This document shows, in pieces, positions 1-41,649 of a stretch of DNA of 64,000 bases. A model generated the notes under the pieces. That model saw nothing but the letters and a program-made list of their open reading frames with translations, did no database searches and was not told the origin of the DNA. This DNA is from Macrostomum hystrix. Taxonomy: Eukaryota; Animalia; Platyhelminthes. The stretch is taken from the NCBI GenBank assembly GCA_950097015.1, contig CATNEN010000003.1, positions 5,828,001 to 5,892,000 on the forward strand, read 5' to 3'. The translations under genes were made by a program, and so were the position numbers. Within the stretch, counting starts at the first letter, position 1, and every line of letters begins with the position of its first letter.

Positions 1-3000
1 TCACTCCGAGCCTGGTGCAGCACCTCAAGCGTCTGGTGAAGAAGAGACTGTTCAAGCTGCTGCTGCTGGCCAGTCCTCGCAATGCGCTCTCAGTCCTGAG
101 GCTGGCCAGAGAAGCTGCAGTCATGCAGCAGAACTACTTCTGGCTCATTCTCGACACTGGACTGTCCAAGGCGGATGTGCTCAGCGTGACGCCAGCGAAC
201 GCGAACGTTGCTCTGCTGAGAGGCAGCGTGTTCACTCACTGCACAGCAGCAGTGATGGATGTGTTTCCTCAGTGCCAGCTGGACTCAATTCGGGTGAGAC
301 TGTCACACTGCAGTGCTGCCTTGCTCACGTCTGTCATCAGCGTGAGTGAGTGACTCAAGCATCGCAGCTCAATCACCGCAACCCCACACTGACCGCTCCG
401 CACCACATTGAGCAGAGTCTGGACGCTCGATTCGTGGATGCGGTGGAAGCCGTGGCCAAGGCGCTGAACGACTCGCTGATGCATCCGGGATTCTCTCCGA
501 GCAACGCCTCCTGCTTTCCGCTGCAGCACTGGACATTGGGATCGACTGTGCTCAGCAAACTGCTCAGCGTGAGCTGCTCACATTTAGACATGATGTCAGA
601 GTCCAGTGAGTAGCTGCACTCACTCACTCACTCACCTGCCATGCACCCACTCGATGCTGCAGATGAGCAACTATGACACTCAGCGTGGCCTCATCTCGTA
701 CAACAGCTCAAGCAGACACTTGAGCTCACAGGGTGTCGAAGTGGTCGCGTCCTACAATGAGCTGCGATGGTCTCCGATCTCGATGCTGAAGTCCGCTGAG
801 TTCGATGTGTCGAGCGGCTCTCTGAGCAAGCAGTTTCGCTACAAGGGAGTGAGCCTGGCCTTTCCCAACACCTTCATGGGCTTCAAGAACCAGACTATTG
901 TCATTTGCGCTCCAGAGGTATTCTTATACTTATTTGCTCTGTCTGAACTTTAGTTCATAAAATTGTTAATTCCTGCTCAATATACTGCAGAGTCCACCAA
1001 TGACGAACTACGTGCAGAAGTTCGCCAACAGCACAGTAGTCATAAACGGAATGACTCTTGATCTACTGAACATTTTGGCTGCGAAGCTAGACTTCCAGTA
1101 TGCTCTTTAGATTTTATTCCAGTTCGGGTTATAGAGTCAAAATCATTCACAGGTAAAGCTTCCTTTCCGGTATTGCATCTTCAATAGGTACTACACCAAG
1201 GACTCGGACGACGGCAACTGGGGCGCTCCAGTTCCCGGTCAGCCGTACTTTAACGGATGCGTTGGAGAGCTTCAGAAAGGGGTGAGCCTTCTTGCCTTGC
1301 TGGATTCAACGAATTATGCTTCGAGGTTCAAGCAAGGTCATCCGTGACACAGACGTGAAGGGCTCTAGGACACTAAACTTATGCAATATTGATTGTTTCG
1401 CTTATTGTACAATTCAATGCCCCATTTTCAGTTAGTGACCATCGCAGCAGGACCGTTCACTCAGAGCACCCTGAGGGACTCTGTCATCGACTTCTCTGCT
1501 CCGCTATTTCAAGAGTCGAACGGCATGCTGCTCCCCAGACCTCCTCCCGCCTCCAAGCTGTGGAATGTGTACACACCTTTTAATTATGACGTGTGGATTG
1601 CCGTGATTGGTTTCCTGTTTGTCAGCTCGTTTTTCACCTGGATATTGGCATACTTCTCACCTTTCACTGCCTACAATTTGCAAGAAGATTACGCTATCGC
1701 TGATGAGGTGTGGCTCCAGGAGTACATCTGGAGCATTGTGGGCAGCTTCCTGCAGCAGGGCCAGGATTTCTATCCTTTCGCCATGTCGCCGAGAACCGTG
1801 CTAGCATTCTGGTGGATGTTTACAGTCATCATCTATGGAGCTTATACAGGTGAGTTGTACAGTAGTTGCTGAGTTCATTTAGCTTATTCCATGGATGACA
1901 GTCTATGCACAGTGATAGTGTTAACTACCTGATGCTGGCTGAGAAAATTAGGACAAGTGTGCAACTCCAGATATAAAATGTCTATACTAGTCTCGTAGGA
2001 ATATATTATGTGTACGGTATACGTCCCAAACGAAACGGTACGTTTCGGTGCACGACCAATGACTGGCACAGGTTGACTGACACACTCTTTGTCCACAGAC
2101 CTTTTGTGACTGTAATTTTGTGACAATCATTTTGTTTGCAGTCAGTCTAGTTGTTCGGGAAATTAGAATCAATCTATGACGATTAAAAACAGATTCTGTA
2201 TTAGAAAGTTAATTTACTGAGAATTTTTGCAAACGCAGGTGACTTGACGGCCCACCTGACGGTGACAATCACAGAATTTCCTATCAAGACTCTGTCAGAC
2301 TTGGTGTCGCAGAGTGTTATTAAACCTTACGTTCCAGCAGGTACTAATTTGTACACCTTGTTTAAAGAGTCGAACTCCGGTGTCTACAAGCAAGTCGCAG
2401 ATGCCATGGTTGAGTTGGGACCCTACGACTATTGTCCGGATTCAGTGAGTGCATGCCATGGGGTCCGACTTGGTAGTTACTGGACCCTTCAGTGCGTTTC
2501 TCTCAATTCAACTACTGATTTCAGATCTTTCGGCCCGACAGAGCATGCCTAAACGACTACACCTACCTGCTAGCCATAGCTAACAAGAACTGTTCGCAGT
2601 ACTATTTAGCTGAGGAAATCTTCAATAGCGGCACTGTGGCTTTTATGTTTCCAGAGGATGCGTACTTCGCGGAGTCCTTCGACTTCTAGTGAGTTAACGA
2701 GTTAAATGCTACTCAAAGAAGAGACACTGTCGGTGGGAGAGCGGCTAACGCATTTGCCTCTCGCACCACGGACCCTAAGTTCGATTCCGCAGCGAGGCCA
2801 CATTCATTTGGGGCGCAGCCGCAGAGAGAAGGTTTGGGGGCTTGTCGTGCAATTTACGCCCTTGTGGGCCAACCTCCAAGGCACAGTGAAATGTACACTC
2901 CCTAACAATGAGAAAATCAGGGCAGATGTACACACCTGTGTGAGTGTGTGCCTGCGCACGGTATCTGTGTGAGTGTGTGCTCAGGAGTCAGCGAAATGGG

Positions 3001-4034
3001 CAGAATAGCCTCCTGGCTGGCTGCTGGTCTAGTGTCACCAAATGATGTGCCATTGCCCGCAGCCGTCCTGCAATTGCTATTATTATCATTAGTTTATATT
3101 TATTGACTATAAATGATTGAGGTGTGGAACGGTAAATACTCCACATAATGTCCGAATCTCGCACCGATTTCCCTGATAACGAATCCGCGGCGAGGCCACA
3201 TTCATTTAGGAAGTAGCCGCAGAGAAGGCTTGTGAGCTTGTTCACAATTAGTAACAACCCCAAAGTCACAGTGGTAAGTGCATAATGTGTGCTCAGAGGT
3301 GCGCAGAATGAGCAGGAAAATGCCAACTGGCTAGCTGTGGGTTGGCTGTATTAATTATTACCTATTACCCAAAGACCACCTTCTAATGTATTTTTTATGA
3401 CTCGCATTTCCTGCTTTCCGTAGCACTGCTGATTTCCCAGCAATTCAGCATTAACTTTGTTCTGTTTTAAAACATACGTTGTTCAGATACTTAACCATCC
3501 CTATCTGTCTATTTTATTCCAAAGAAATCATTGCCCACAAAACATGCCTATTTTTTTTACATTATTATCCGCTGCAATCGAGGATGTTTTTGCGAATGTA
3601 CCAAATTAACTATCCCTTAATAAGGCCAACTAGGCAATAGCCAGTCTGCCCATTCCGCTAGTCCCTGAGCACATGTTTACAAACTACAAAGTCGCATTGA
3701 TATGAACACTTGGCCTGAATTTTGTATCAGAATAGCTTTTTTTCAACAGTGAATGTACATGTCCACGCTTCCTCAAACCTTTCTCCGCGACCTCAGCATG
3801 AAGAAACTGTCGGAGACTGGTCAGATGCAGCGGCTATTCAACAATTACTGGTCAAGTGACACAGTCTGCACGGCTGGCAAGTCAACCGAGGCCAGCTCCA
3901 TCACATTTGAAGGTGTTGGCGGCTGCTTCATTGTTACCGGCTGCATGTACACCGTAGGTCTTGTCATCCTCCTGTTTGAGCTCGTCTGGACTAAGCTGGC
4001 AAAAAAGCAGCCACTGGATTGCATTATCTACTAA
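1..4034 (+). CDS. Divergent ionotropic glutamate receptor-like subunit, paralogue 1 (5'-truncated by window edge)
   Basis: Spliced by hand using GT-AG sites: exons <1-293, 416-568, 663-917, 991-1097, 1188-1281, 1432-1849, 2239-2444, 2525-2688, 3797-4034. Motifs: S1 DGNWGAP and GPFTQSTLRDSVIDFS, pore GSFLQQG, M3 YGAYTGDLTAHLT, S2 GTNLY, M4 EGVGGCF. Frame is open across all junctions. Confidence 0.9.
2733..3090 (+). mobile_element. tRNA-derived SINE family A
   Basis: Pol III A-box-like ggcagagcgg-type head and B-box gttcgattcc, ~330-350 bp body, (att)n-like tail. More than 12 dispersed copies in the window. This one is in intron 11 of paralogue 1. Confidence 0.8.
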
Positions 4035-7516: not shown

Positions 7517-10500
7517 TCAAAAGATAATGCAGTCCAACGGCTGTTTCTTGGCCACCTTTGTCCAGAAGAGCTCGAAGAGCAGGATGAGTAGGCCAGCTGC
7601 GTAGAAAGCGAAGGCGACTATGCAGCAGCCGCCGATGCCTTCAAGATTGATGGGGTCGCCTTCCGACGTTAGGCTTCTCCTGCAGTCGGCATCGCTGGAC
7701 CAGTATTCCTGGAACCAGCGCTGAATGAGGCCAGTATCATACAACTTCTGCATCCTGAAGTAGGTTTTGTTAGCGATAAAAAGTTAGTTCTGCCCATTCT
7801 ACTGGCTCTCACAAAGGTGTGTGCACATCTGCCCTGAATTTTTCATCGTCATTCATCTCACAGTGTGCAACGAGCCCTAGCCTTCCCTACATGGTTCTAA
7901 ACTCAAATTACGATCACCATGGAGTCGAGTTCAGGGACTTTACAAACGATAAACGTTCTGCCAATCAACCCACATTTCTCAAATCAAGCAAATTTTGAAT
8001 AGATTAACAGCTCGTTGCTCACTGAAAGTTGAATAGTTCAGCGTAGGGCGCATCTTCCGGAAACATGAACGCTACGGTTCCCGTATTGAACTGCTCGTTG
8101 GCCATGTAGTACTGGCTGCAGTTCTTCAATGCTATGTCTAGAAGAAATGTGTAGTCGGAGATGCACGCCTGGTCTGATCTTGCTGGCTGCAATGGAAGAG
8201 CGAAGTAGCTCCTACATGTACCTCAGACGATTTCTGCTAGTAGTAAAATGCATACCTGCATAAAAAAAATAATAATTGTAGGAGGGCTGCGGGCCATGGC
8301 ACATTGTTTGGTGACACTAGACCCCCAGCCAGCGAGGACGCTGACTCCTGAGCACACACGCACACAGATACTGTACGCAGGCATTCGCCCACACAGGTGT
8401 GTACATCTGCCCTAACTTTCTCATCGTCAAGCAGTGCACACTTGCACTGTGCTTTGAATGTCAGCCCTCAAGGGTGTAAATTGCACGATAAGCCCCCAAG
8501 ACTTCTCTCCACAGCTGCACCCCAAATGAATGTGGCCGCGGAATCGAGCTCAGGGACCTTAGCGTGAGAGGCAAACGCGTTAACCGCTCTGCCACTCACT
8601 CCAGTCATCTCCATGTAGCTACTTCTACTATGCTTGCTACTTACATAAAACGGGCAGTTTTCAGAGGGCCCATAAACGACCATCTTGTCGGCGATCTGCT
8701 TGTAAACACCAGATTTGGATTCCGTGAGCAGTGTATAAAGATTTGTTCCATTTCGCACGTAAAGCTTTATAGCCGACTGTGAAACCAGTGAATTCAAGGA
8801 ATTTATAGGCTCTTCAGTTGTCGAAACTATCAGATACGCAGCGAGATTGCCTAAAAAATTTGCATTCGACATGCTGCAGACAGGCAATGATATTTTTAAA
8901 GTCAGTCAATAGCATAAAAAAACTCACCTCCGAAACAGCCATTTATGATGACAGTGAAGAACCACCAGAAGGCCAGCAGAATCCGAGCTGACGTTGCCGA
9001 TGGATAGAAATCCTGGCCTTGCTGCAGGTAGCTACCGATAAAAGTCCACATGTACTCTTGAGCCCACGTTTCATCTCCAATAGAATTTTCAAGACCTAGA
9101 TTAAAGGCCGTGAACGGAGAAAAGTAAGCCAAGAACCAAGTGATGAGAGCTGATACAAGCGTTGTACCGATGATCGCTATCCAAACGTAATTGTTGAATG
9201 GTGTAAAAATGTTCCACATCATGGACTTTCGTGGCGGCTTTGGAACCAAGACTGCATTCGATTCTTGGAAAAGCGGGCTAGAAAAGTCTATGACGGAATC
9301 TCGACCCGACGTTTTGGTAAAAGGTCCAGCTCCAATAGCCACTATCTACAAAGAGAGTTACCAATGACGACAATTTAGAAAAGGTGCTAAAAATTCTCCT
9401 TAACACACAGTGGCAAACCCACTCCACGCTGCAGCTCTCCAACGCATCCCGTGTAGTACTCAGAGTTTGGCTGGGGTGCACCCCAGCTGCCATCACTGGG
9501 ACTCTTGGTGGTAAATCTGAAAATGCAATGACAACGAAAGTCTTTCTTATTTCTAACGTCTGTAGGACGAGCTACAACTCAGGAAGGATATAAAGGGTTA
9601 CCGAAAATCTAACCGCTCGGCCAAATGATTCAAAATGTCTAAAGTCATGCCGGAAATTTCAACAGAGCTGTCTGGATACAACTTTAGGAATTTCGTCATC
9701 GGTGCACTCTGCAAAGCGGAAAAATGGACAGATAACAAGACACGAACTATTTAACAAAAACAATTCGAACTCTTGAACAACATCCTGTACCTCGGGCGTA
9801 CAAATGATAATAGTCTGGTTCTTGAAGCCCATGAAGGTGTTGGGAAAGGCCAGGCTCACTCCCTTGTAGCGAAACTGCTTGCTCAGAGAGCCGCTCGACA
9901 CATCGAACTCAGCGGACTTCAGCACCGAGATCGGAGACCATCGCAGCTCATTGTAGGACGCGACCACTTCGACACCTTGTGAGCTCAAGTGTCTGCTTGA
10001 GCTGTTGTACGAGATGAGGCCACGCTGAGTGTCATAGTTGCTCATCTGCAACATCGAGTGGGTTCATGGCAGATGAGTGAGTGAGTGAGTGCAGCTACTC
10101 ACTGGACTCTGAAATGATGTTTAAATGTGAGCAGCTCACGCTGAGCAGTTTGCTGAGCACAGTCGATCCCGATGTCCAGTGCTGCAGCGGAAAGCAGGAG
10201 GCGTTGCTCGGAGAGAATCCCGGATCCACCAGCGAGTCGTTCAGCGCCTTGGCCACGGCTTCCACCGCATCCACGAATCGAGCGTCCAGACTCTGCTCAA
10301 TGTGGTGCGGAGCGGTCAGTGTGGGGTTGCGGTGATTGAGCTGCGATGCTTGAGTCACTCACTCACGCTGATGACAGACGTGAGCAAGGCAGCACTGCAG
10401 TGGACAGTCTCACCCGAATTGAGTCCAGCTGGCACTGAGGAAACACATCCATCACTGCTGCTGTGCAGTGAGTGAACACGCTGCCTCTCAGCAGAGCAAC

Positions 10501-11527
10501 GTTCGCGTTCGCTGGCGTCACGCTGAGCACATCCGCCTTGGACAGTCCAGTGTCGAGAATGAGCCAGAAGTAGTTCTGCTGCATGACTGCAGCTTCACTG
10601 GCCAGCCTCAGGACTGAGAGCGCATTGCGAGGACTGGCCAGCAGAAGCAGCTTGAACAGTCTCTTCTTCACCAGACGCTTGAGGTGCTGCACCAGGCTCG
10701 GAGTGACAGAGGCGTTGGCAGTGTTGTCCACTTGGAATGTGAGACTGCTCACTCCGGCAGCGGTGAGGCCGCTCTGCAGGCTCTGCACAGCGGCGCTGCC
10801 TGCAGGCATTGGTGTGTTTGAATCGTCACAACTTGTACATCAGGACAGAGTTTGAGCAGTGTTTACTCACTCTGACGCCCGTCGAACAAGATGGCCACAT
10901 CACTGACCACCGAGTCGGCTGTGATGACGGACACTGCAGCAGCCACCATGTTGTCGGAGCTGTGACTGCCAACAATGGTGAAGTCTAAAAATCATAGAAA
11001 AGCAATTTAGGTTCATTCTCGACCCGAGATTTATGCACTTTTAGTCTAGTTACCTTTGAGCAGCTGGGCCGAGTCGCACAAGCCGGTGGGCAGTGCGATG
11101 AGCGGCAGCTGCAGAGACTTGCTGAGTGAGCCCACCTGATCGAGCAGAGAGCAGCTGCCGACACCAATCAGAGCTGACAGGCCGCTCCCCGAGCACACTG
11201 CGGAGCGAGACACACTTTTACAATCAGCACTGTGCTCAGCATTTTACAGGCATCGCACAGCAAATGGCGAATGCCAGCAGCAGCCAACTCACCAGTCCTG
11301 ACAGCCTGCTGTGAACTGCACCAGCTCACATTCACATGCACATATGAGAGTGTGTGACCCTGCAGCACTCTCCAGTTGGAGTTCACGCGTCTGGCGAACG
11401 CCTTCTCCATCAACGACTCGCTCACCTGCCCGTCTTCCGTGACCACGCCGACCTTCAGGTTGAGGGCAGAGACGGTACTGCTCAGAAGGATCAATGTTAC
11501 TAGTTTGAGTGTGGACTCAGCGCTCAT
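7517..11527 (-). CDS. Divergent iGluR-like subunit, paralogue 2 (12 exons)
   Basis: ATG at 11527 with signal peptide MSAESTLKLVTLILLSSTVSA. ATD exons near-identical to the other copies. GPFTKTSGRDSVIDFS, pore GSYLQQG, M3 NGCFGGNLAAYLIV. Ends KKQPLDCIIF* at 7517. Same intron positions as the paralogues. Confidence 0.9.
8272..8605 (-). mobile_element. SINE family A
   Basis: Reverse-complement match to 2733-3090. In intron 10 of paralogue 2. Confidence 0.8.
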
Positions 11528-14085: not shown

Positions 14086-17000
14086 CTAAAATATTGGACA
14101 ATCCAACGGCTGCTTCATTAACAATTTAGTCCAGAGTAATTCCACAAACAAAATAAGCAGACCAACACCATAAAGACCAAGACAGACAATGCAACTGCCG
14201 CCAATGCCCTCTAGATTAATCGGATCGGCGTCTGAAGTAATTTCAGTCTTGCAGCCGTTCTCGTTGGACCAGTAGAAAGAAAACCAACGCTGAATCTGAC
14301 CGGACTCGTGCAGCTTCTGCAGGCTGACATTAGGTGGTTTTTCAGTGTGCCAATAAAAAATCAATGCTCAAAACTAAAACTAACGAGACAGTGTTGACTG
14401 GTTATTATTTTGCAGATTGTACTCACTGGAAGTTGAACAAATCTGCGTATGGAGCATCCTCAGGAAACATAAAAGCAACCGAACCGGTATTAAACTGCTC
14501 CTCCGCCATGTAGTACTGGGTGCAGTTTTTCAGCGCTATCGCCAGCAATGCCGAGTGGTCGTCTAGACAAGCCTGGTTAGGCCTAGGAGGCTTGATAAGT
14601 TGATGATGAAGTGCAAATATAAACTTTATATCTTAGTCGTTAAATTCACAATAAATCTTTCTTAGACTAGAAGCCTCACATCAGACGGACAGGTCTCGTA
14701 TGGTCCAAAAGCCACCATCTTGTTGGCGATTTGTTTGTACACACCTGACTCGGCCCTCGCCAAGAGAGTGTACAGGTTGGTGCCGCTGGAAACATAAGGA
14801 ATGATGGCATCTTGGGAGACCAGATCCTCCAGCGTTTTTATGGGCAGGTTGGTGACAGACACAGTCAGGTAGGCAGTAAGAACAGCTGAAACGCAGAATT
14901 GTACAGTGTCGAGGACACACTTCAACGTGCTACCCCATAGATCGATTATGAACTCTCACCTGAATAGGTCGCGTACAGAATGATAATAAAGAACCACCAA
15001 AATGCCAAACTGGCACGCGCTGACATTGCGAACGGAAAGAAATCCTGTCCCTGCTTCATGAAGCTGCCAATGAAGGTCCAGAGGTACTCTTGCAGCCGGA
15101 TCTCATCAGATATAGCAAAATCCATGCCCAAGTTGTACGCACTGAAAGGTGAAAAGTATGCAAGCAGCCAGGCTATGAAGGAACAGCTAACAATAGTGCC
15201 GATCAGTATGCACCAGACTGTGCTTGTGAATGGCATGAATAAGTTCCATAGTTTAGACTCCCGATGCGGTTTGGGAATCATCACAGCATTCGACTCTTGA
15301 AAAAGCGACGTAGAAAAATCAATCACGGAGTCCCGGATAACAGTTTTTGTGAATGGCCCAGCTCCGAGAGTAGCGTTCTGCAAAATGATTGAAAAACTAC
15401 GTCCTACGTCAAAGAGTACAGTCGTGACCACGAAAAGCGCAGAATTATAAGTTAAGAGTTATTTACGCCTTGCTGCAACTCGCCGACGCAGCCAGTAAAA
15501 TATTCTGAATCCGCCTGAGGAGAGCCCCAGTTGCCATCTTCTGAATCCTTCGCGACAAAACTAAAATGTTTTGTGTACACGAATAATAAAAAACGTTCAA
15601 TTGTCCAAAATAGAAAAAAAACTCGTTCATATGCATGCAAATATTATTAAATTGAACAAAAAAAAACAAACCGAAACTCCATTTTGGCGGCAAGATAGTT
15701 CAGAATGTCGATTGTCATTCCGCTCATTACGTTTGACTTGTTGGGAAAAACTTCATTAAAAATGGTCATTGGCGGAGTCTAAAAACAGCACAAGACCATA
15801 AATAAAAGACGAATCACGATACGAAAAATGATTTCCGTTTAACGGTGAAAAACTATTTTTAAAGCGAACCTCTGGAGCACAGACAATAATGGTTTGATTC
15901 TTGAAGCCCATGAAGGTGTTGGGAAAGGCCAGGCTCACTCCCTTGTAGCGAAACTGCTTGCTCAGAGAGCCGCTCGACACATCGAACTCAGCGGACTTCA
16001 GCATCGAGATCGGAGACCATTGCAGCTCATTGTAGGACGCGACCACTTCGACGCCTTGTGAGCTCAAGTGTCTGCTTGAGCTGTTGTACGAGATGAGGCC
16101 ACGCTGAGTGTCATAGTTGCTCATCTGCAACATCGAATGGGTAAATGGCAGGTGAGTGAGTGAGTGAGTGCAGCTACTCACTGGACTCTGAAATCATGTT
16201 TAAATGTGAGCAGCTCACGCTGAGCAGTTTGCTGAGCACAGTCGATCCCGATGTCCAGTGCTGCAGCGGAAAGCAGGAGGCGTTGCTCGGAGAGAATCCC
16301 GGATCCATCAGCGAGTCGTTCAGCGCCTTGGCCACGGCTTCCACCGCATCCACGAATCGAGCGTCCAGACTCTGCTCAATGCGGTGGGGTTGCGGTGTTT
16401 GAGCTGCGATGCTTGAGTCACTCACTCACGCTGATGACAGACGTGAGCAAGGCAGCACTGCAGTGGACAGTCTCACCCGAATTGAGTCCAGCTGGCACTG
16501 AGGAAACACATCCATCACTGCTGCTGTGCAGTGAGTGAACACGCTGCCTCTCAGCAGAGCAACGTTCGCGTTCGCTGGCGTCACGCTGAGCACATCCGCC
16601 TTGGACAGTCCAGTGTCGAGAATGAGCCAGAAGTAGTTCTGCTGCAAGACTGCAGCTTCTCTGGCCAGCCTCAGGACTGAGAGCGCATTGCGAGGACTGG
16701 CCAGCAGCAGCAGCTTGAACAGTCTCTTCTTCACCAGACGCTTGAGGTGCTGCACCAGGCTCGGAGTGACAGAGGCGTTGGCATTGTTGTCCACTTGGAA
16801 TGTGAGACTGCTCACTCCGGCAGCGGTGAGGCCGCTCTGCAAGTCCTGCAGCAGTTTAACACCTTAGTAATGGGATTCGCGGATGAAAATGAGATATAAG
16901 TGAAATTTTGGTTACTAGGTTATGTAAAATAAAAGTTTCTGAATAATTAATGGCAGTTTCAAATCTTGTGCGAAATTGGTCCTTTCGCACAGTAAAAAAT

Positions 17001-17694
17001 ATTCTAAACGAATACCTACTTTGTATTCTGTCGAAGAAGATGGCGGCGCTGGAGACCACATTATCTGATCTTAGCAATGCGACGGCTGCATCCCTAATGT
17101 TCAGCGAACTGTGGCTGCCCATCACCGAATAAGCTAAAAAAGTTTTTTTCGCTTTACTGATTAACTTTCAAAACATTTCAACTTTTCATTTTTAAGTCAA
17201 TTATTTTTTAGGTCTACCTTTGAGCAGCTGGGCCGAGTCGCACAAGCCGGTGGGCAGGGCGATGAGCGGCAGCTGCAGAGACTTGCTGAGTGAGCCCACC
17301 TGATCGAGCAGAGAGCAGCTGCCGACACCAATCAGAGCTGACAGGCCGCTCTCCGAGCACACTGCGGAGCGAGACACACTTTCACAATCAGCACTGTGCT
17401 CAGCATTTTACAGGCAGCGCACAGCAAATGGCGAATGCCAGCAGCAGCCAACTCACCAGTCCTGACAGCCTGCTGTGAACTGCACCAGCTCACATTCACA
17501 TGCACATATGAGAGTGTGTGACCCTGCAGCACTCTCCAGTTGGAGTTCACGCGTCTGGCGAACGCCTTCTCCATCAGCGACTCGCTCACCTGCCCGTCTT
17601 CCGTGACCACGCCGACCTTCAGGTTGAGGGCAGAACCTGTTAAGATTAAACTGTTTACTAAAAAGAAATAAGCTAGATTGTGCCTACGCCCCAT
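14086..17694 (-). CDS. Divergent iGluR-like subunit, paralogue 3 (12 exons)
   Basis: ATG 17694 with signal peptide. Its own divergent exon 3 (17133-17020). GPFTKTVIRDSVIDFS, pore GSFMKQG, M3 YATYSAVLTAYLT. Ends MKQPLDCPIF*. Confidence 0.9.
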
Positions 17695-20733: not shown

Positions 20734-23700
20734 ATGTACCTACAGCTGCACCTCATTCTTCTTTGTTTTGCCGTCAGTTCAGTAGCCCTCAACCTGAAGG
20801 TCGGTGTGGTCACAGAAGACGGGCAGATGAGCGAGTCGCTGATGGAGAAGGCGTTCGCCAGACGCGTGAACTCCAACTGGAGAGTGCTGCAGGGTCACAC
20901 ACTCTCATATGTGCATGTGAATGTGAGCTGGTGCAGTTCACAGCAGGCTGTCAGGACTGGTGAGTTGGCTGCTGCTGGCATTCGCTACTTGCTGTGCGCT
21001 GCCTGTGAAATGCTGAGCACAGTGCTGATTGTGAAAGTGTGTCTCGCTCCGCAGTGTGCTCGGAGAGCGGCCTGTCAGCTCTGATTGGTGTCGGCAGCTG
21101 CTCTCTGCTCGATCAGGTGGGCTCACTCAGCAAGTCTCTGCAGCTGCCGCTCATCGCCCTGCCCACCGGCTTGTGCGACTCGGCCCAGCTGCTCAAAGGT
21201 AACTGGACTAAAAGTGCACTTATCTCTGGTCGGGCATGAACCAAAATGCCGTGCTCTGTGATTTTCCAGACTTCACCATTGTTGGCAGTCACAGCTCCGA
21301 CAACATGGTGGGTGCTGCAGTGTCCGTCATCACAGCCGACTCGGTGGTCAGTGATGTGGCCATCTTGTTCGACGGGCGTCAGAGTGAGTACACACTGCTC
21401 AAACTCTGTCCTGATGTACAAGTTGTGACGATTCAAAAACACCAATGCTTGCAGGCAGCACCATTGTGCAGAGCCTGCAGAGCGGCCTCACCGCTGCCGG
21501 AGTGAGCAGTCTCACATTCCAAGTGGACAACACTGCCAACGCCTCTGTCACTCCGAGCCTGGTGCAGCACCTCAAGCGTCTGGTGAAGAAGAGACTGTTC
21601 AAGCTGCTGCTTCTGGCCAGTCATCGCAATGCACTCTCAGTCCTGAGGCTGGCCAGAGAAGCTGCAGTCATGCAGCAGAACTACTTCTGGCTCATTCTCG
21701 ACACTGGACTGTCCAAGGCGGATGTGCTCAGCGTGACGCCAGCGAACGCGAACGTTGCTCTGCTGAGAGGCAGCGTGTTCACTCACTGCACAGCAGCAGT
21801 GATGGATGTGTTTCCTCAGTGCCAGCTGGACTCAATTCGGGTGAGACTGTCACACTGCAGTGCTGCCTTGCTCACGTCTGTCATCAGCGTGAGTGAGTGA
21901 CTCAAGCATCGCAGCTCAATCACCGCACCGCACCGCATTGAGCAGAGTCTGGACGCTCGATTCGTGGATGCGGTGGAAGCCGTGGCCAAGGCGCTGAACG
22001 ACTCGCTGGTGGATCCGGGATTCTCTCCGAGCAACGCCTCGTGCTTTCCGCTGCAGCACTGGACATCGGGATCGACTGTGCTCAGCAAACTGCTCAGCGT
22101 GAGCTGCTCACATTTTGATATGATGTCAGAGTCCAGTGAGTAGCTGCACTCACTCACTCACTCACCTGCAATGCACCCACTCGATGCTGCAGATGAGCAA
22201 CTATGACACTCAGCGTGGCCTCATCTCGTACAACAGCTCAAGCAGACACTTGAGCTCACAGGGTGTCGAAGTGGTCGCGTCCTACAATGAGCTGCAATGG
22301 TCTCCGATCTCGATGCTGAAGTCCGCTGAGTTCGATGTGTCGAGCGGCTCTCTGAGCAAGCAGTTTCGCTACAAGGGAGTGAGCCTGGCCTTTCCCAACA
22401 CCTTCATGGGCTTCAAGAACCAGACTATTGTCATTTGTTCCCCTGAGGTTTGTGCTCTTTTGGCGCCGGCGTACGTATGTTTGACTTTAGTCCTTAATTT
22501 AGCGTATAAGGCTTTCGACTGCATATTATGAGTATTTAATGATGAACATAAGCCTAAATCAGGTTCATTTCGCATCGCTATATTTCTAGAGCTCGCCAAT
22601 GACTGTATTTGATCAGAAATTTTCCAACAATACCGTCGTAATGAGTGGCATGACTTTGGATTTGTTGAAGTTCTTTGCCAGTGAGCTGGACTTTCGGTAA
22701 ACAGTTTGTAGTTTGTACCTGATCAGACACGGCATCAGAGAAGCAATTGAGCCAAGTTTGTTCGAACGCGTGTATTTTTTCTGTATTTTCCAGTTTTGTT
22801 ACGAAGGATTCAGACGATGGCAACTGGGGCGCTCCTCAAAGTGGTTCGATGTACTTCTCTGGATGCGTCGGCGAATTACAGAGAGGAGTAAGTGAAAATC
22901 TGTTTTTCATGTCTGGACTGAATGCCGCATATAACTATTAATAACTAGTTATCCTCCCTATAGGAGGTGACTGTAGCTGCCGGACCCTTCACAAAGACAT
23001 GCGTTCGCGACGCGGTGATTGACTTCTCTGCCCCAATATTTCAAGAGTCGAACGGCATTCTTCTTGCCCGACCGCCCAGGCAGTCGAAACTGTGGAATGT
23101 TTTCACTCCTTTGTCCGTTGGCACCTGGCTCGTAACCGTGGCATTCGTTGTTACGGCTGCTTTTGTTACCTGGCTTTTAGCTTACTTCTCTCCGTTCACA
23201 GCCTACAATCTGAAAATTGATTACGCCATCGCAGACGAAATCTGGCTCCAAGAGTACCTATGGAGCATCATTGGAAGCTTCATGCAGCAGGGCCAGGATT
23301 TCTATCCATTCGCAATGTCCGCTAGAACTGTTCTGGCGTTCTGGTGGATGTTCACAGTTGTCATCTATGCCGCTTACACTGGTAAGCGCTTTTCATTAGA
23401 TGCCTGTTTGAAGCAAAAAAAAATTTAACGATATTTCACAGTACTGGACTTTGGGCTTAAATACAGCTTTGGACTTCAACTTTCAGGTGATCTGACGGCA
23501 CACCTGACTGTGACGGTCACGGACTATCCTATTAAGACGCTGCAAGATCTGGTGTCGCAGACCGCCATTACACCGCATGTAACAACTGGCACCAATCTGT
23601 TTACCTTAATGGCACAGTCAACATCGGGAATCTACAGACAAGTGGCTAACCGAATGGTGGAACTAAGTCCTAATGAAGACTGTCTGACTAACGTGAGTCT

Positions 23701-24899
23701 GTCAGTACATGCTCGTCATTATTTCATGTGGGAACTTGTAGTCTTCTTGATTAGTGACTTCGGCAAAGGCGTGTGCTCAGTTGTTCAGCGGAATAGACAG
23801 CTTTATCTTCTCACAGGATGAGGATCAGCCAAGTGTTGCGCAGTGACCACAGCCATAGGCAAATATGTGTTATGAATCTTTATGATTAATAAATGGAGCA
23901 CTAAACAAACCTGCTAGGAGGGTGAGTGGCAGAGCGCTTGCCACTCGCACCAAGGTCCCAGAGCGCGACTCTGTGGCGTTGCCACATTCATTTGGGGCGC
24001 AGCAGCGGAGAGAAGGCTTGTAGGCTTGTTGTGCAATTTACGCCCTTGAGAGCCAATCTGCAAGGTACAGTGAGAGTGTACACTGCCTGACGATGAGAAA
24101 TTCAGGGCAGATGTACACACCTTTGTGAGCTTGTGTGATCTTTGTGCGTGTGTGCTCAGGAGCCAGTGAAATAGTCAGAATTGTCTCCTCGCTGGCTGTG
24201 GATCTAGTGTCAACAAATAATGTACCATTGCCTGAAATTTCATATTGCTATCTTAAACAGCCGCCCAGTGCAAACCAGGCCTGCATGAACGACTACACAT
24301 TTTTGCTGGCGATTGCTAAGAAGAATTGCTCACAGTTTTACCTGGCTGAGGAGCTGTTTAACACTGCTACAGTGGCATTTATGTTTCCGGAGGATGCTGT
24401 GTATGCTGACGCTTTCGACTTCCAGTAAGTGATGCGGATTTAGAAATTTTGTCGCACTTCAGTATAACCAGGAGTAGAAATCTAGGGAAAAATGGTAGGC
24501 TTTTTATGGACCAAAAATACTCTGCGAAGTCGAGACTGATTTACGAGTTTTCCTTCATTCTACTCCTAGCGGTTCTAGTATATTACCGTACACACGTACG
24601 AGTGTGCGAGCCATGTTAAACTATGATTACAAACGGATGTATTTGTTCAAATTTATTTCAGCATGCAGAAGCTACACGAGTCTGGTCAAATCCAGCGCTG
24701 GTTCGAGCAGTACTGGTCTAGCGACACCATCTGTACAGTTGGCACATCAACTGAGGCGGAATCCATCAATCTGGAAGGCGCTGGTGGCTGCTTCATCATT
24801 TCTCTGAGTTTGTACCTGGCTGGGTTAGCAATTTTGCTGCTGGAACTGATCTGGACTAAGCTGGCGAAGAAACAGCCACTGGATTGCATCATGTATTGA
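20734..24899 (+). CDS. Divergent iGluR-like subunit, paralogue 4 (12 exons)
   Basis: Exons 20734-20959, 21055-21198, 21270-21383, 21455-21840, 21946-22098, 22193-22447, 22590-22696, 22794-22887, 22964-23381, 23487-23692, 24261-24424, 24662-24899. All GT-AG and in frame. Pore GSFMQQG, M3 YAAYTGDLTAHLT, ends LDCIMY*. Confidence 0.92.
20785..22420 (+). repeat. ~1.6 kb near-identical ATD block shared by all six iGluR paralogues (other copies ~1-890, ~9820-11468, ~15899-16841 plus ~17217-17631, ~31568-33170, ~37599-39202)
   Basis: Direct comparison: exons and introns match almost base for base from about ...gacgggcag(g/a)tgagcgagtcg to ...atgggcttcaagaac, then diverge abruptly. Confidence 0.95.
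23918..24232 (+). mobile_element. SINE family A
   Basis: Family match. In intron 10 of paralogue 4. Confidence 0.8.
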
Positions 24900-31486: not shown

Positions 31487-34400
31487 ATGGTACTCAGACT
31501 GTTGCTATTCATTACGCTTTTCGGATGTACAATGCCCCTAAGTCTAAAAGTTGCGGTAATAATGGGGGACGGGCAGGTGAGCGAGTCGCTGATGGAGAAG
31601 GCGTTCGCCAGACGCGTGAACTCCAACTGGAGAGTGCTGCAGGGTCACACACTCTCATACGTGCATGTGAATGTGAGCTGGTGCAGTTCACAGCAGGCTG
31701 TCAGGACTGGTGAGTTGGCTGCTGCTGGCATTCGCCACTTGCTGTGCGCTGCCTGTGAAATGCTGAGCACAGTACTGATTGTGAAAGTGTGTCTCGCTCC
31801 GCAGTGTGCTCGGAGAGCGGCCTGTCAGCTCTGATTGGTGTCGGCAGCTGCTCTCTGCTCGATCAGGTGGGCTCACTCAGCAAGTCTCTGCAGCTGCCGC
31901 TCATCGCCCTGCCCACCGGCTTGTGCGACTCGGCCCAGCTGCTCAAAGGTAACTGGACTAAAAGTGCACTTATCTCTGGTCGGGCATGAACCAAAATGCC
32001 GTGCTCTGTGATTTTCCAGACTTCACCATTGTTGGCAGTCACAGCTCCGACAACATGGTGGGTGCTGCAGTGTCCGTCATCACAGCCGACTCGGTGGTCA
32101 GTGATGTGGCCATCTTGTTTGACGGGCGTCAGAGTGAGTACACACTGCTCAAACTCTGTCCTGATGTACAAGTTGTGACGATTCAAAAACACCAATGCTT
32201 GCAGGCAGCACCATTGTGCAGAGCCTGCAGAGCGGCCTCACCGCTGCCGGAGTGAGCAGTCTCACATTCCAAGTGGACAACACTGCCAACGCCTCTGTCA
32301 CTCCGAGCCTGGTGCAGCACCTCAAGCGTCTGGTGAAGAAGAGACTGTTCAAGCTGCTGCTTCTGGCCAGTCCTCGCAATGCACTCTCAGTCCTGAGGCT
32401 GGCCAGAGAAGCTGCAGTCATGCAGCAGAACTACTTCTGGCTCATTCTCGACACTGGACTGTCCAAGGCGGATGTGCTCAGCGTGACGCCAGCGAACGCG
32501 AACGTTGCTCTGCTGAGAGGCAGCGTGTTCACTCACTGCACAGCAGCAGTGATGGATGTGTTTCCTCAGTGCCAGCTGGACTCAATTCGGGTGAGACTGT
32601 CCACTGCAGTGCTGCCTTGCTCACGTCTGTCATCAGCGTGAGTGAGTGACTCAAGCATCGCAGCTCAATCACCGCACCGCACCACATTGAGCAGAGTCTG
32701 GACGCTCGATTCGTGGATGCAGTGGAAGCCGTGGCCAAGGCGCTGAACGACTCTCTGATGGATCCGGGATTCTCTCCGAGCAACGCCTCCTGCTTTCCGC
32801 TGCAGCACTGGACATCGGGATCGACTGTGCTCAGCAAACTGCTCAGCGTGAGCTGCTCACATTTAAACATGATTTCAGAGTCCAGTGAGTAGCTGCACTC
32901 ACTCACTCACTCACCTGCCATGCACCCACTCGATGCTGCAGATAAGCAACTATGACACTCAGCGTGGCCTCATCTCGTACAACAGCTCAAGCAGACACTT
33001 GAGCTCACAAGGCGTCGAAGTGGTCGCGTCCTACAATGAGCTGCGATGGTCTCCGATCTCGATGCTGAAGTCCGCTGAGTTCGATGTGTCGAGCGGCTCT
33101 CTGAGCAAGCAGTTTCGCTACAAGGGAGTGAGCCTGGCCTTTCCCAACACCTTCATGGGCTTCAAGAACGAAACCCTTATTATATGTACTCCTCAGGTCA
33201 TTTCCATATTGTTTCATTAGTGAAAATTTTTACCATCTTGGATAAAGTTAAAAAAGATTTCGATTCATGTTTTTTCCAATCGCTAATTATTTCAGTCTGT
33301 ACCGAAGACAATTTTCCTGCAGAAGTATGCCAACAACACTGTCGTTATAGCTGGAATGACCTTCGATATTCTGAACATCATGTCCAAGAAGCTAGACTTT
33401 AGGTAGCGACAAGTAGAATCGTGTTTTCATATAGAATAAATGTGGCACTGCCTTTCTTCTTTGCGTAATCGTCTCGCCTTTTAGGTTCATTACCAAGGAC
33501 TCAGATGACGGTAACTGGGGCACGCCCCAGCAAGGCCAGAGTTATTTCACTGGCTGCGTTGGCGAGCTTCAGAGAGAGGTGCGTTAGTTTGCTTACTTAG
33601 TCGATATGATTGGGATGCAATCGAATAGCCCATTGTTGAAAACATTTTAGCTGGTTACCATTGCTGCTGGGCCTTTCACGAAAACTTCAATACGAGATGC
33701 CGTCGTGGATTTTTCGACGCCGCTTTTTCAAGAGTCGAACGCCGTACTAGTTCCGAAGCGTGAGCCACCGTCCAAAGCTTGGAATGTGTTTGCGCCCTTT
33801 ACCTGGGATACATGGCTGGCTCTTGTTGGAACTCTGGCTGCTTGTGCAGTTGTAACTTGGATATTTGCCTATCTATGTCCGTTCTCAGCTTATAATCTTC
33901 AGCTTGAGTACGCTGTTGCTGATGAGGTCTGGCTTCAGGAGTACGTCTGGAGTGCCATCGGTAGCTTCCTACAGCAAGGTCAGGACTTTTATCCGTTCGC
34001 AATGTCACCCAGGACAGTCATGGCTTTCTGGTGGATGTTCACCGTCATCATCTATGGAGCCTACACTGGTAGGCTACTGAGCACCTACCTCTGTGCCTGA
34101 CTGTACCGCTCCCGATTTTCAGAACCTTCAAACCTGAGACCTAAATCTGAGCTTTCTAAAAAAGAGAATAACTTAATATCCTCTTTGACAAATCACAGGT
34201 GATCTGACGGCTCATCTAACGGTGACAATTACGAACTTCCCAATACAGACTCTCTCAGATCTTGCAGAACAAAATCAGATAAAGCCAGTGGTAAATGATG
34301 GCACCAATCTTTATTCATTGTTAACGGAAGCCAAGACTGGAGTCTACCAGCAGATATCAAACAAAATGCAGGTCATTGCGTCAAATTCTGACTGTCCAGA

Positions 34401-35422
34401 GAATGTATGGATCATGAACTTCATGCAGACTTATAAACTTGCAATTTTCCCATTTCTTTAATTGTTACAGAGAGGTACATTTCATCACCTTATTTTAGCC
34501 ACCAAAGCCAAATCAAGCTTGCATTGCTGACTACACAACACTGCTGGCCATCGCTATGAGGAACTGCAGCCAATACTACCTGGCTAAAGAGTTGTTTAAC
34601 ACCGCTACAGTGGCTTTTATGTATCCTGAGGACGCGTACTTTTCCAGTTTGTTCGACTTTTAGTGAGTAACGTTTTTTGGAAAGGTTTCTTTATTTTCAC
34701 AGACGTCGTTCTATCTCTTTTAGTAAAATGCTATGAGCGTACAATGCTTCGAATATAGTTTAATGATTTTCGCTGGCGAGGTTTAAACTAGTTGTAGAGT
34801 ACTTTTGATTGCAAGCGCTTCTCTCACATAAGTGGCCTAAATCGGCAAATCAACGGTGAGACCACATTTATTTGGGGCGCAGTCGCGGAGAGAAGGCTTG
34901 GGGGCTTGTCGTGCAATTTACACCCTTGAGGACCAACCTCCAAGGCACAGTGAGAGTGTACACTGCATCACGATGAGAAAGTCAGGGCAGATGTACCCAC
35001 CTGTGTGAGTGTGTGCCTGTGTTCGGTATCTTTGTGAGTGTGTGCTCAGGAGTCAGCGAAATGGACAGAATTGCCTCCTCGCTAGTATTGTTGGTGACGT
35101 TCCCGTGCCTACAGCCCTCCTAAAAATACAAATTTTATGAGTAACTTCAACAGAAAGTTATGGAAATTTCCATACACCTTCCAGCATGCAGAAACTACAC
35201 GAGAGTGGAGTCATGCAGCGCCTTTTTGATATCTATTGGTCCGACGATCAGCATTGCGGTTCGTCCACTTCAACGGATGCAAACACAATCGACATGGAGG
35301 GTGTAGCTGGGTGCTTTATTGTCACTAGTTGTCTGTACATCATCGGGCTGATGATTCTACTTCTTGAACTAGGCTGGACTCGGCTGTGCAAAAGGCGTCC
35401 CAGTGATTGCTTGATTTACTGA
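31487..35422 (+). CDS. Divergent iGluR-like subunit, paralogue 5 (12 exons)
   Basis: Signal peptide MVLRLLLFITLFGCTMP, shared ATD block, GPFTKTSIRDAVVDFS, pore GSFLQQG, M3 YGAYTGDLTAHLT. Ends RRPSDCLIY*. LBD-to-M4 splice junctions checked in frame. Confidence 0.9.
34855..35125 (+). mobile_element. SINE family A (5'-degenerate)
   Basis: Family match. In intron 11 of paralogue 5. Confidence 0.78.
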
Positions 35423-37512: not shown

Positions 37513-40500
37513 ATGGAAGCATTGTGCAGTCTAACGATTCTTTTGGTAATTATTCATGGCGCAACGACACTTGCTTTTAAAATTGGTGTGATCACGGAGG
37601 ACGGGCAGGTCAGCGAGTCGCTGATGGAGAAGGCGTTCGCCAGACGCGTGAACTCCAACTGGAGAGTGCTGCAGGGTCACACACTCTCATATGTGCATGT
37701 GAATGTGAGCTGGTGCAGTTCACAGCAGGCTGTCAGGACTGGTGAGTTGGCTGCTGCTGGCATTCGCCATTTGCTGTGCGCTGCCTGTGAAATGCTGAGC
37801 ACAGTGCTGATTGTGAAAGTGTGTATCGCTCCGCAGTGTGCTCGGAGAGCGGCCTGTCAGCTCTGATTGGTGTCGGCAGCTGCTCTCTGCTCGATCAGGT
37901 GGGCTCACTCAGCAAGTCTCTGCAGCTGCCGCTCATCGCCCTGCCCACCGGCTTGTGCGACTCGGCCCAGCTGCTCAAAGGTAACTGGACTAAAAGTGCA
38001 CTTATCTCTGGTCGGGCATGAACCAAAATGCCGTGCTCTGTGATTTTCCAGACTTCACCATTGTTGGCAGTCACAGCTCCGACAACATGGTGGGTGCTGC
38101 AGTGTCCGTCATCACAGCCGACTCGGTGGTCAGTGATGTGGCCATCTTGTTCGACGGGCGTCAGAGTGAGTACACACTGCTCAAACTCTGTCCTGATGTA
38201 CAAGTTGTGACGATTCAAACACACCAATGCCTGCAGGCAGCACCGTTGTGCAGAGCCTGCAGAGCGGCCTCACCGCTGCCGGAGTGAGCAGTCTCACATT
38301 CCAAGTGGACAACACTGCCAACGCCTCTGTCACTCCGAGCCTGGTGCAGCACCTCAAGCGTCTGGTGAAGAAGAGACTGTTCAAGCTGCTGCTTCTGGCC
38401 AGTCCTCGCAATGCGCTCTCAGTCCTGAGGCTGGCCAGTGAAGCTGCAGTCATGCAGCAGAACTACTTCTGGCTCATTCTCGACACTGGACTGTCCAAGG
38501 CGGATGTGCTCAGCGTGACGCCAGCGAACGCGAACGTTGCTCTGCTGAGAGGCAGCGTGTTCACTCACTGCACAGCAGCAGTGATGGATGTGTTTCCTCA
38601 GTGCCAGCTGGACTCAATTCGGGTGAGACTGTCACACTGCAGTGCTGCCTTGCTCACGTCTGTCATCAGCGTGAGTGGGTGACTGAAGCATCGCAGCTCA
38701 ATCACCGCACCCCACCGCATTGAGCAGACTCTAGACGCTCGATTCGTGGATGCGGTGGAAGCCGTGGCCAAGGCGCTGAACGACTCGCTGGTGGATCCGG
38801 GATTCTCTCCGAGCAACGCCTCCTGCTTTCCGCTGCAGCACTGGACATCGGGATCGACTGTGCTCAGCAAACTGCTCAGCGTGAGCTGCTCACATTTAAA
38901 CATGATTTCAGAGTCCAGTGAGTAGCTGCACTCACTCACTCACTCACCTGCCATGCACCCACTCGATGTTGCAGATGAGCAACTATGACACTCAGCGTGG
39001 CCTCATCTCGTACAACAGCTCAAGCAGACACTTGAGCTCACAAGGCGTCGAAGTGGTCGCGTCCTACAATGAGCTGCGATGGTCTCCGATCTCGATGCTG
39101 AAGTCCGCTGAGTTCGATGTGTCTAGCGGATCTCTGAGCAAGCAGTTTCGCTACAAGGGAGTGAGCCTGGCCTTTCCCAACACCTTCATGGGCTTCAAGA
39201 ACGAAACTATTGTTGTTTGTTCTCCATCGGTATGTTGTCTTTTTGTTACACAGACAAAGTTTTGTCTCCGACATCTGAATTGTTATTATTTTTAGACGAG
39301 CCCGGTGACGGTATTCCGACAGACTTTTTCCAACAGAACTGTTGTAATTTCTGGAATGACCCTTGATGTTTTAAATGTATTGGCTTCAAAACTTGATTTT
39401 AGGTACGTTAATCGTTTTTTATGATTTTAATGAAATTTATTGGTCTCATTTTTATCTTCAAAGATGGATTTGAGTATTATCGTTGATTTTTTAGATTTAT
39501 TACAAAAGACTCGGACGATGGAAAGTTCGGTTCTCCGCAGCCCGGTCTAAGCTACTTCTCAGGCTGTGTTGGTGAACTTCAGCGAGGTGTAAGTTGCAGA
39601 GTGCTATGCGCATTTTAATTTAGCATTTTAGTTTTCGGTTTTTCCTTTTCTGAATATTTTAGCTTGTGACCCTTGCGGCTGGCCCCTTCACTAAGACATC
39701 ATCGCGCGACGAGGTGGTAGACTTCTCGACGCCACTGTTTCAAGAGTCTAACGCCGTACTACTGCCGAGACCGCCGAGAGAGTCCAAAATGTGGAATGTG
39801 TATCGATCGCTGACTGTTGAAATCTGGCTACTGATTGTTGCTGCTTTATTTTTCATGTCTTTGATGACCTGGATCTTGGCCTATTTCTCACCGTTTTCGG
39901 CATACAATCTCAAGCTTGAGTTTGCCATCGCTGATGAGGTCTGGCTGCAGGAGTACATCTGGAGTGCCATCGGTAGCTTCCTTCAACAAGGTCAGGACTT
40001 CTATCCGTTTGCCATGTCGCCCAGGACTCTCATGGCTTTCTGGTGGATGTTTACTGTCATCATCTACGCATCCTATACAGGTGAGCATAGTCGCTTTTTG
40101 ATGGCATTTTCGACTATTATAAGATGTTTTATAGTGATGCAAAAAGACTACACTCGTACTTGTCCATTTTATTGGTGTTTAGGCGACCTGACGGCTCACC
40201 TGACAGTTTCCATGACCAATGTGCCAATTAAGAGTCTGTCAGATCTTGTCTCGCAGAGCCACATAAAGCCGAACGTATTTGGTGGCACGAATCTGGAAAC
40301 TCTCCTTCGGGAAGCAAAATCTGGTGTCTACAAACAGATCGCTGATCGAATGATCATTTTGGGTCCGAACGAGGACTGTCCTTCATCGGTAGGAATTCAA
40401 TTTTTTTGTTACTCTTTGCTGGAACTATTTATTCAATGAATTTCACATTTTAATTTTATCAATGTAAATCAATACCGCAGCCTCCAAAGCCTGAGCAGGC

Positions 40501-41649
40501 CTGTCTTGGAGACTACACACCCAGACTGTATATAGCCAGGAATAACTGCTCACAGTTTTACCTGGCTGAGGAGCTGTTTAACACCGCTACTGTTGCTTTT
40601 ATGTATCCGGAAGATGCTTACTATGGAGCGCTAATGGATTTCTAGTAAGTTTGCAAAATGTATGTTGTGTTTGGTCAGTAACAGACGAATGCATCAATTT
40701 ATGACTACTAGATGGTCATGTACTATTATCTGCTAAATTAAATAACTCTTACATGCTCTATCTGAGAAAGTAGCGTGACAACTTCTATACTCAGAAAGCA
40801 TGATGCATAAAGACGTTTTTCTAGGTGTGGCGTACTTCTTAGTCCATGGACTGAACTTGCTGTACGTAGCCTTTGAAAGGCTGCCACTCTCTGTACGTCT
40901 GGCCCAGCTAGGCTAGGTGTCATTAATTTCTTTGAATCGCTGTCTATCTATTGTCTGTGTTGGACGCGGGACCAAAAAAATTAACGGCGATGGCGGTAAC
41001 GATTGTTACCGACTATTTTTTAACAAAAAAATTGGGTAACGAGAAATACCAAAATAGTAACGATCGTTACTTCAAATCGTTACTTTCAGTTTTTACTATT
41101 TTACCATAAGCATGCTATTTTTAAATAAGCTTATTATAAAAACGTGTAGCTTTGTTTATCAATCATTACTCATATCATGTGTTGTAATCTCCGACATCGT
41201 CCACTTTTCAGACTTCGTTATCATTATCACTCTCACAGACTGTAGTCTGTCTATGGATTGAACAATAAATATTCGTTACCATCATTTTCGTTATCAGATC
41301 GCAAAAAAGTAAACGATCGTTACTAAATTGGTAACTAGTAACGAGTAACGCGCTTAACACTGTCTATAGTAAACAATTATTGTCTATTAACGAAATCGCG
41401 CTTCTCAGCATGCAGGAATTGCACGAGTCAGGCCTGATGCAGCGCCTTTTCAACATCTACTGGTCTAGTGACTCTGTTTGCTCAGTCGGTTCATCCGCTG
41501 AGGCTGATCCTATCAACCTGGAAGGTGTTGGCGGCTGTTTCATTATCAGCCTTTGTCTGTACGGCCTCGGACTGCTCATTCTGCTGGTTGAGTTCCTATG
41601 GACCAAGGGTGCCAAGAAGCAGCCATTGGATTGTCAGTACATCTACTGA
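37513..41649 (+). CDS. Divergent iGluR-like subunit, paralogue 6 (12 exons)
   Basis: Signal peptide MEALCSLTILLVIIHGATT, shared ATD block, DGKFGS, GPFTKTSSRDEVVDFS, pore GSFLQQG, M3 YASYTGDLTAHLT. Ends KKQPLDCQYIY*. Confidence 0.9.
40955..41362. mobile_element. hAT-type MITE in intron 11 of paralogue 6
   Basis: Ends c(t)gtgtt.. / ..aacactg, multiple GTAAC/GTTAC subterminal repeats, 8-bp TSD tctattgt / tctatagt (7/8 match). Confidence 0.7.

Follow-up and report, generated by a model that had tools for sequence, protein, structure and literature searches.

Domain-limited gene conversion is a well-known process, and the closest described system to the one reported here is regional gene conversion in the clustered protocadherins (Pcdh) of teleosts. 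In fugu and zebrafish, the 3' part of the variable exons is more than 99% identical among paralogues, whereas the EC1-EC3 domains are diverse (PMC1852091, citing Noonan et al. 2004). Here we analysed a window of 64,000 nucleotides from the flatworm Macrostomum hystrix (assembly GCA_950097015.1, contig CATNEN010000003.1, positions 5,828,001 to 5,892,000 of the forward strand), which carries six of a set of nine paralogous ionotropic glutamate receptor (iGluR) genes, c1 to c9. In these genes, a block of DNA coding for the amino-terminal domain (ATD) is very probably kept uniform by gene conversion restricted to that domain, while the ligand-binding and pore halves are older than the species.

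As in the teleost clusters, tandem receptor paralogues share one region that is near-identical in nucleotides and differ in another, the boundary lies inside the coding sequence at a domain (EC4/EC5 in Pcdh), the diversified part is the specificity-determining part, and homogenisation is lineage-specific, so that trees built from the converted regions are misleading. Differences from Pcdh lie in the gene family, in the multi-exon nature of the block and in the domain concerned: the genes belong to an ion channel family, the block covers an N-terminal assembly domain, and in each gene it takes in six exons and five introns, where in Pcdh a portion of one large variable exon is converted. The copies also occur on both strands and fall into two sub-clusters separated by 400 kb, and the signature in GC content at third codon positions (GC3) is not clean. 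Unlike clustered Pcdh and UGT1A, no shared constant exons are joined by splicing, and RNA contigs join the block exons in cis. Concerted evolution by interlocus conversion has been reviewed for the gamma-globins HBG1/HBG2, the opsins and RHD/RHCE (PMC3966226). Bounded tracts, mosaic variants and within-species paralogues that are closer than orthologues are common to those systems and this one, which differs in its nine genes, five clusters, domain-precise edge and persistence across a species split. In the literature we found no paper joining gene conversion with iGluRs or with an amino-terminal domain, and the Macrostomum glutamate-receptor papers do not treat this family.

The coordinates of the six window genes and of the features discussed below are collected in Table 1. 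The sequence-only reading, made from the letters of the window, had described a six-gene array; six genes do lie in the window, but the set is nine, since three further genes with the same block (c7-c9, minus strand, block identity to the window copies 96-97%) were found at C3:6262978-6279953, 400 kb away. The reference model, c4, was built from spliced RNA contigs aligned to the DNA, GT-AG sites and one open frame; its junctions e1/e2, e4/e5 and e5/e6 were set directly by spliced contigs, and an RNA contig that jumps from 21198 to 21476 bounds those between e2, e3 and e4. In the other copies the exon lengths agree with c4 and the frames are open, the one exception among the nine genes being the last exon of c7, which was not found in 4.8 kb of downstream DNA. 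The window cuts c1 within exon 4: what precedes the cut, including exons 1-3, falls in the 0.9 kb upstream of the window, and exons 5-12 lie inside the window. In each of the nine genes a separate copy of the block runs directly into that gene's 3' exons, and signal peptide and upstream DNA are likewise particular to each gene, except for an upstream stretch that c8 and c9 have in common.

Table 1. Genes, exons, homogenised and unconverted segments, and repeats in and around the window (window coordinates unless a locus is named).
Feature	Coordinates	Strand	Remarks
c1	1..4034	+	intact frame, exon lengths as c4; window opens inside exon 4; stop at 4034
c2	7517..11527	-	12 exons, intact; start codon approximate; block 9818-11467
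c3	14086..17694	-	12 exons, intact; block 15897-17631, broken by unconverted island
c4	20734..24899	+	reference model, 12 exons, 834 aa; block 20782..22420
c5	31487..35422	+	12 exons, intact; block 31562-33169
c6	37513..41649	+	12 exons, intact; block 37582-39202
c4 exons e1-e4	e1 20734-20959, e2 21055-21198, e3 21270-21383, e4 21455-21840	+	gene model
c4 exons e5-e8	e5 21946-22098, e6 22193-22447, e7 22590-22696, e8 22794-22887	+	gene model
c4 exons e9-e12	e9 22964-23381, e10 23487-23692, e11 24261-24424, e12 24662-24899	+	gene model
Homogenised ATD block	c4 20782..22420	+	~1.65 kb; exons 2-5, the greater part of exons 1 and 6, introns 1-5
Unconverted c3 island	16863..17217	-	intron 2, exon 3, intron 3, first bases of exon 4
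Unconverted c1 island	L051:7571-7907	+	just upstream of window; exon 3 with flanking introns
c7/c8 exon 9 patch	L052:6095-6511 vs L053:2099-2515		second, weaker homogenised patch
Related interspersed-repeat copies	~2728-3057, 8292-8602, 18242-18533, 19635-19890, 26499-26788, 34858-35083, 48370-48680, 59089-59253
Further tandem array	6032 to ~7000		10-12 bp unit, strong GC and AT skew
Further tandem array	44659-45846		37 bp unit
Further tandem array	49324-50140		19 bp unit

All nine genes are iGluRs, as follows from three lines of evidence. Exon 9 of c4 matches the Pfam model PF00060 (Lig_chan) over M1, the pore loop and M3 (E = 9.9e-15, 55 bits against a cut-off of 30.8), the same exon aligns to GluA2 residues 469-607 (E = 9e-19) with a QQG pore loop present, and P0017, the Macrostomum lignano orthologue of c1, has the complete domain set when taken at full length: PF01094 (ANF_receptor, the ATD) at residues 30-338, PF10613 (Lig_chan-Glu_bd, S1/S2) at residues 401-512, and Lig_chan. 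The ATD of P0017 is 79-83% identical to the block, and the closest database proteins to the window genes all come from M. lignano. Database searches were run with single exons or database proteins, and dN/dS and trees were computed from joined coding sequences. A profile of exon 10 matches kainate-receptor S2 (E = 5e-4); in PDB neither the exon-11 profile nor single exons 10 and 11 gave a match, and in Pfam the single ATD and S2 exons of the window genes gave none. The order ATD, S1, M1-M3, S2, M4 is that of AMPA/kainate-type iGluRs (GluA2, GluK2), from which these proteins differ in being only about 30-35% identical and in having a short tail ending PLDCxxY. Vertebrate subunits, unlike those described here, are dispersed single genes with distinct ATDs.

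The block is 96-100% identical among copies (95.5-98.6% among the six window genes by BLAST), most 50-nt windows being 97-100% identical, and at both ends identity drops to about 25-60% within ~10 nt. In c1 the homogenised block extends to window position 890. The 3' edge lies inside exon 6 directly after the FKN codons, 27 nt before the donor, in 9/9 copies, and corresponds to the first residue of the Pfam Lig_chan-Glu_bd model on P0017. The 5' edge, just past the signal peptide, shifts by as much as 37 nt among copies (c4 coordinates 20775-20812), the latest being that of c5, at GACGGGCAG; c8 and c9 have an additional ~100 nt in common upstream of it. These are the limits that the sequence-only reading had proposed, and alignment recovered both. 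Near-identity of the block and its introns in all six genes had also been proposed, and this held apart from exon 3 with introns 2-3 in c3 and c1, where identity is only about 50-60%.

Divergence within the block is 1.06% in exons and 3.3% in introns, with synonymous divergence (dS) of 0.029 and nonsynonymous divergence (dN) of 0.007. In the 3' half, by contrast, synonymous sites are saturated (proportion of synonymous differences, pS, 0.76) and dN is 0.30; the downstream exons are 66-77% identical in nucleotides and the downstream introns cannot be aligned, so that the domain-by-domain comparison of dS suggested earlier came out as anticipated. GC3 in the block (0.74) exceeds that of the downstream exons (0.51-0.63), as does intron GC (0.55 against 0.33-0.44).

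The comparison with M. lignano carries most of the weight. Each M. lignano ATD is about equally close to all nine copies (77-83% identity), and the ATD tree consists of two species clades, each with 100% support in the Shimodaira-Hasegawa-like approximate likelihood ratio test (SH-aLRT). The post-ATD halves instead pair with individual M. lignano proteins: c1 with P0017 (83% over 417 aa, against 58-68% between P0017 and the other copies; branch support 98), c2 with P0001 (75% against 55-63%; 99), c4 with P0004 (77% against 59-69%; 87), c6 with P0002 (72% against 52-67%; 96-98, with 98/94 also given) and c7/c8 with P0021 (79% and 75% against 56-62%; 100). Grouping the nine post-ATD halves against M. 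lignano was rejected by the approximately unbiased (AU) test (difference in log-likelihood 305, p = 3.9e-7). Within M. lignano the same contrast appears, P0015 and P0017 being 96% identical in the ATD and 54% after it, and P0017 and P0021 98% and 60%. Since the post-ATD halves pair by orthologue while the ATDs form species clades, the paralogues predate the separation of the species, and homogenisation of their ATDs came after it. Separate ATD and post-ATD trees had been set beforehand as the test, and their incongruence is that predicted by domain-restricted conversion. Read together, these trees show the ligand-binding and pore halves to have diverged before the split from M. lignano.

Variants inside the block do not follow a tree. 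The four mutually incompatible groupings noticed in the first inspection are all present in the alignment: T at 21657 in {c2, c6}, the 21852 indel in {c2, c3, c5}, A at 22296 in {c3, c4} and a longer intron-4 end in {c1, c2}. The four-gamete test was failed by 97 of 276 pairs of informative sites, the Hudson-Kaplan minimum (Rm) was at least 9 exchanges within 1.3 kb, and neighbouring sites were more compatible than shuffled ones (permutation test modelled on the pairwise homoplasy index, PHI, p = 0.003), which bears out the earlier description of a pattern that is not tree-like and spans inverted copies. Some variants are common to both sub-clusters across 400 kb (20910 in {c5, c8, c9}, 22041 in {c4, c7}).

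Two genes retain segments that escaped homogenisation. The c3 island, AT-rich (intron GC 0.28) and saturated in dS, matches the other copies at only about 50-60% identity and has dN of 0.45-0.55 against all of them. Taken together, the c1 and c3 islands are saturated in dS with dN of 0.2-0.55 against every other copy, while both flanks are ~98% identical. No further copy of either exon-3 island was found anywhere in the genome, which marks the islands as leftovers of the old ATDs, not as imported sequence. In c7-c9 the exon-3 segment is of intermediate age (dS ~0.1). These cumulative results show repeated, patchy and non-reciprocal transfer that is confined to ATD-coding DNA and has been active since the M. 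lignano split. The distribution of variants shows that it runs in patches a few hundred bases long, links copies of the same and of opposite orientation and reaches across 400 kb; the mapped edges show that copying stops where homology stops, past the signal peptide on one side and where the ligand-binding domain begins on the other. Such transfer would be produced by double-strand-break repair with a paralogous block as template, and the tracts would be confined to the block because homology ends there.

The pattern is not limited to these nine genes. The 220 Mb genome holds at least 36 iGluR-family loci, and four more clusters, analysed on loci of 3.4-4.7 kb, show the contrast between ATD and S1/S2: a trio on C34, an inverted pair on C1, and pairs on C15 and C24. 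At the amino-acid level their ATDs share about 45-65% identity with the C3 block; within the clusters, ATD dS is 0-0.055 against 0.43 to infinity in the S1/S2 exons. In the C34 trio the block is 99-100% identical and begins 10 nt upstream of the ATG. The edge was aligned in three of the clusters (C34, C1 and C15), where it lies no more than ~40 nt from the same codon. Partial homogenisation is also seen in the pore exon of the younger pairs (C34, C15, C24) and of c7/c8 (dS 0.1-0.36, 88-94% nucleotide identity), with diverged S1/S2 exons on either side, so that the ligand-binding domain is what consistently escapes conversion. Neighbouring genes are not always homogenised, as ATD dS reaches 1.9 in C15 (104k/127k) and 0.74 in C24 (5635k/5621k).

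Several observations weigh against conversion or limit what can be drawn from it. Unconverted members of the family also have GC3 of 0.7-0.8 throughout, so there is no clean signature of GC-biased conversion. Within the M. hystrix genome alone, monophyly of the nine 3' halves is not rejected (AU p = 0.16), and the outgroup species is needed to reject it. The M. lignano set consists of partly fragmentary UniRef models from a polyploid species, and some of its near-identical ATDs could be homeologues. Copy-specific variants rest on the assembly, and part of the mosaic could be polishing error.

That the identity of the whole block is an assembly or polishing artefact, with sequence collapsed or copy-pasted, we consider very improbable, even though near-identical 1.65 kb repeats are hard to assemble. 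Contigs (unitigs) of a DNA run, independent of the assembly, gave a depth of ~78 in the unique flanks of c4 and of 394-692 in the block, that is 5-8.8 times the flanks, as expected from nine copies, and the lowest value (5 times) fell at the exon-3 segment, where copies differ. Every copy is moreover in frame with its own distinct flanks, the M. lignano proteins have the same architecture, and the other clusters show the pattern with different block sequences. Recent whole-gene duplication followed by very fast divergence of the 3' halves under positive selection would account for a block that differs by only about 1-3% between copies; this account is scarcely conceivable, being refuted by the saturated 3' synonymous sites, the unalignable 3' introns, the ancient exon 3 inside the block of c1 and c3 and the one-to-one M. 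lignano orthologues of the 3' halves. Tandem arrays do undergo unequal crossing-over, and sequence alone cannot always separate its outcomes from those of conversion; the 5' halves might have been exchanged by reciprocal unequal crossing-over or exon shuffling instead of non-reciprocal conversion. We regard this, too, as very improbable: variants are common to inverted copies and to copies 400 kb apart, and a crossover between such copies would cause an inversion or a deletion of the DNA between them; short patches are indicated by the unconverted islands inside the block and by the number of exchanges in so short a distance; and all nine genes are intact with their own promoters and signal peptides retained.

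With conversion as the preferred reading, what remains to be weighed is why the ATD is uniform. From a 3' edge that lies at a domain border and not at a splice site, from its recurrence across clusters and from the M. lignano contrast, we infer that selection acts against overwriting the ligand-binding domain; the recurrent edge at a protein-domain border would then mark selection against erasing ligand-binding differences. The constant ATD may nevertheless have no adaptive role of its own, conversion being real and self-sustaining in that identity permits conversion and conversion preserves identity, with the ligand-binding exons having escaped because selection or early divergence removed homology there. 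We place this by-product at close to even chances. It agrees with block edges that coincide exactly with the loss of homology, with 5' edges that vary per copy as expected of eroding tracts, with the partly homogenised pore exon of the younger pairs, which suggests conversion wherever it is tolerated, and with an ATD that is not unusually conserved between species (~81% in amino acids). The recurrence of the edge in four independent clusters of the genome, within ~40 nt and at a domain border instead of an intron, and the M. lignano contrast at the protein level, speak against it. Block exons are also three times less diverged than block introns, with dN/dS of ~0.24, so that the ATD is functional. 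Neither argument proves selection for uniformity. The by-product model fits the data equally well as selection for a uniform ATD.

Uniformity of the ATD might itself be useful, by providing a common dimer or assembly interface or by binding a shared partner, and we hold this to be possible but less probable than not. The ATD of AMPA/kainate-type receptors drives subfamily-specific dimer and tetramer assembly. More doubtful still is the fuller proposal, whose functional core the sequence-only reading had also put forward, that the homogenised ATD is a selected 'constant region' through which nine subunits, each with a promoter, signal peptide and ligand-binding domain of its own, would co-assemble freely into heterotetramers, giving a combinatorial and probably chemosensory repertoire that conversion together with selection would have maintained in several clusters, and in two Macrostomum species at the least. 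A homodimer prediction with two copies of the P0017 ATD (residues 14-398) scored 0.00 and has no bearing either way.

The genes resemble the ionotropic receptors (IRs) of insects and other protostomes in being a lineage-specific tandem expansion derived from iGluRs with diversified ligand-binding domains, and by this likeness a chemosensory role is plausible. Most IRs lack an ATD and depend on ATD-bearing co-receptors. Here, unlike in IRs, 9/9 subunits encode a full ATD, and it is this domain that stays constant. In S1, the carboxylate-binding motif GPFT.T..R is retained in 9/9 copies, the S2 contact residues read GTN where the canonical sequence is GST, and the position of the acidic contact with the alpha-amino group is occupied by A, D or Y instead (alignment by eye). 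These divergent S2 contacts would be compatible with non-standard ligands, as a lead only. At the M3 gate position the proteins read (A/S)YT-G-(D/N/V)L(T/A)A(H/Y)L against canonical SYTANLAAF, a stretch alignable to NLAAFLTV of GluK2/GluK5 but diverged; the gate motif is AYTGDLTAHLTV here and SYTANLAAFLTV in AMPA/kainate-type iGluRs. In exon 12 of every copy (e.g. window 24860-24899) the short C-terminal tail ends (K/R)(K/R)(Q/K/R)P(L/S)DCxxY/F-stop, a motif conserved in every paralogue despite ~60% identity elsewhere, which could be a trafficking or anchoring signal.

Spliced RNA contigs across block exons were present in three other runs, and the genes are therefore transcribed; the 3' exons of c4 appeared at low depth. 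One run labelled as a different organism contained, besides spliced contigs, a 1 kb unspliced piece that is identical to c4 window 22400-23423 and retains the intron; this species is present in the sample, or else the label was applied loosely. Beyond the window end, 33 kb away at L055:4771-7594 (= C3:5924771-5927594), lies a tenth iGluR 3' half; it is without the block, no ATD exons being detected in 4.7 kb upstream. Its exon 9 is split by ~1.1 kb and its exons 8 and 11 have frame shifts, and it is probably a truncated pseudogene.

The window also holds repeats and candidate mobile elements. A short interspersed repeat of about 250-300 bp at 23844-24299, in intron 10 of c4, recurs in both orientations with 70-85% identity between copies, and its summed unitig depth of up to 1.4 million against ~78 for unique DNA points to an enormous copy number. 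Arrays with a 16-bp unit lie downstream of c1 (4340-5100) and of c4 (25111-25950) and are mutual reverse complements (~88%). Between c4 and c5, at 28213-29654 (+), an open reading frame (ORF) with a THAP-type zinc-finger start (C..C...CSLHF) is followed by two more ORFs and may be the remnant of a P-element/THAP9-like transposase. Downstream of c6, at 42911-43738 (+), a 275-aa ORF has a tyrosine-recombinase-like motif (HSIRATA ... GH ... Y) and is a candidate only.

For work on this family, the ATD sequences are unfit for orthology assignment or trees, and short-read assemblies will collapse the genes. The locus offers an unusually clean case of domain-limited concerted evolution: its edges are sharp and lie at a protein-domain border, unconverted remnants reveal the age of the genes, exchange takes in inverted copies and spans 400 kb, and the pattern has persisted through speciation. 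It is also a natural experiment on the role of the ATD, in which at least nine subunits carry the same ATD on ligand-binding domains that are 50-70% identical, and the other clusters, with their different 'constant' ATDs, lead to a prediction of cluster-specific assembly groups. If it proved true, a selected constant ATD would be the ion-channel counterpart of the constant/variable logic of the protocadherins.

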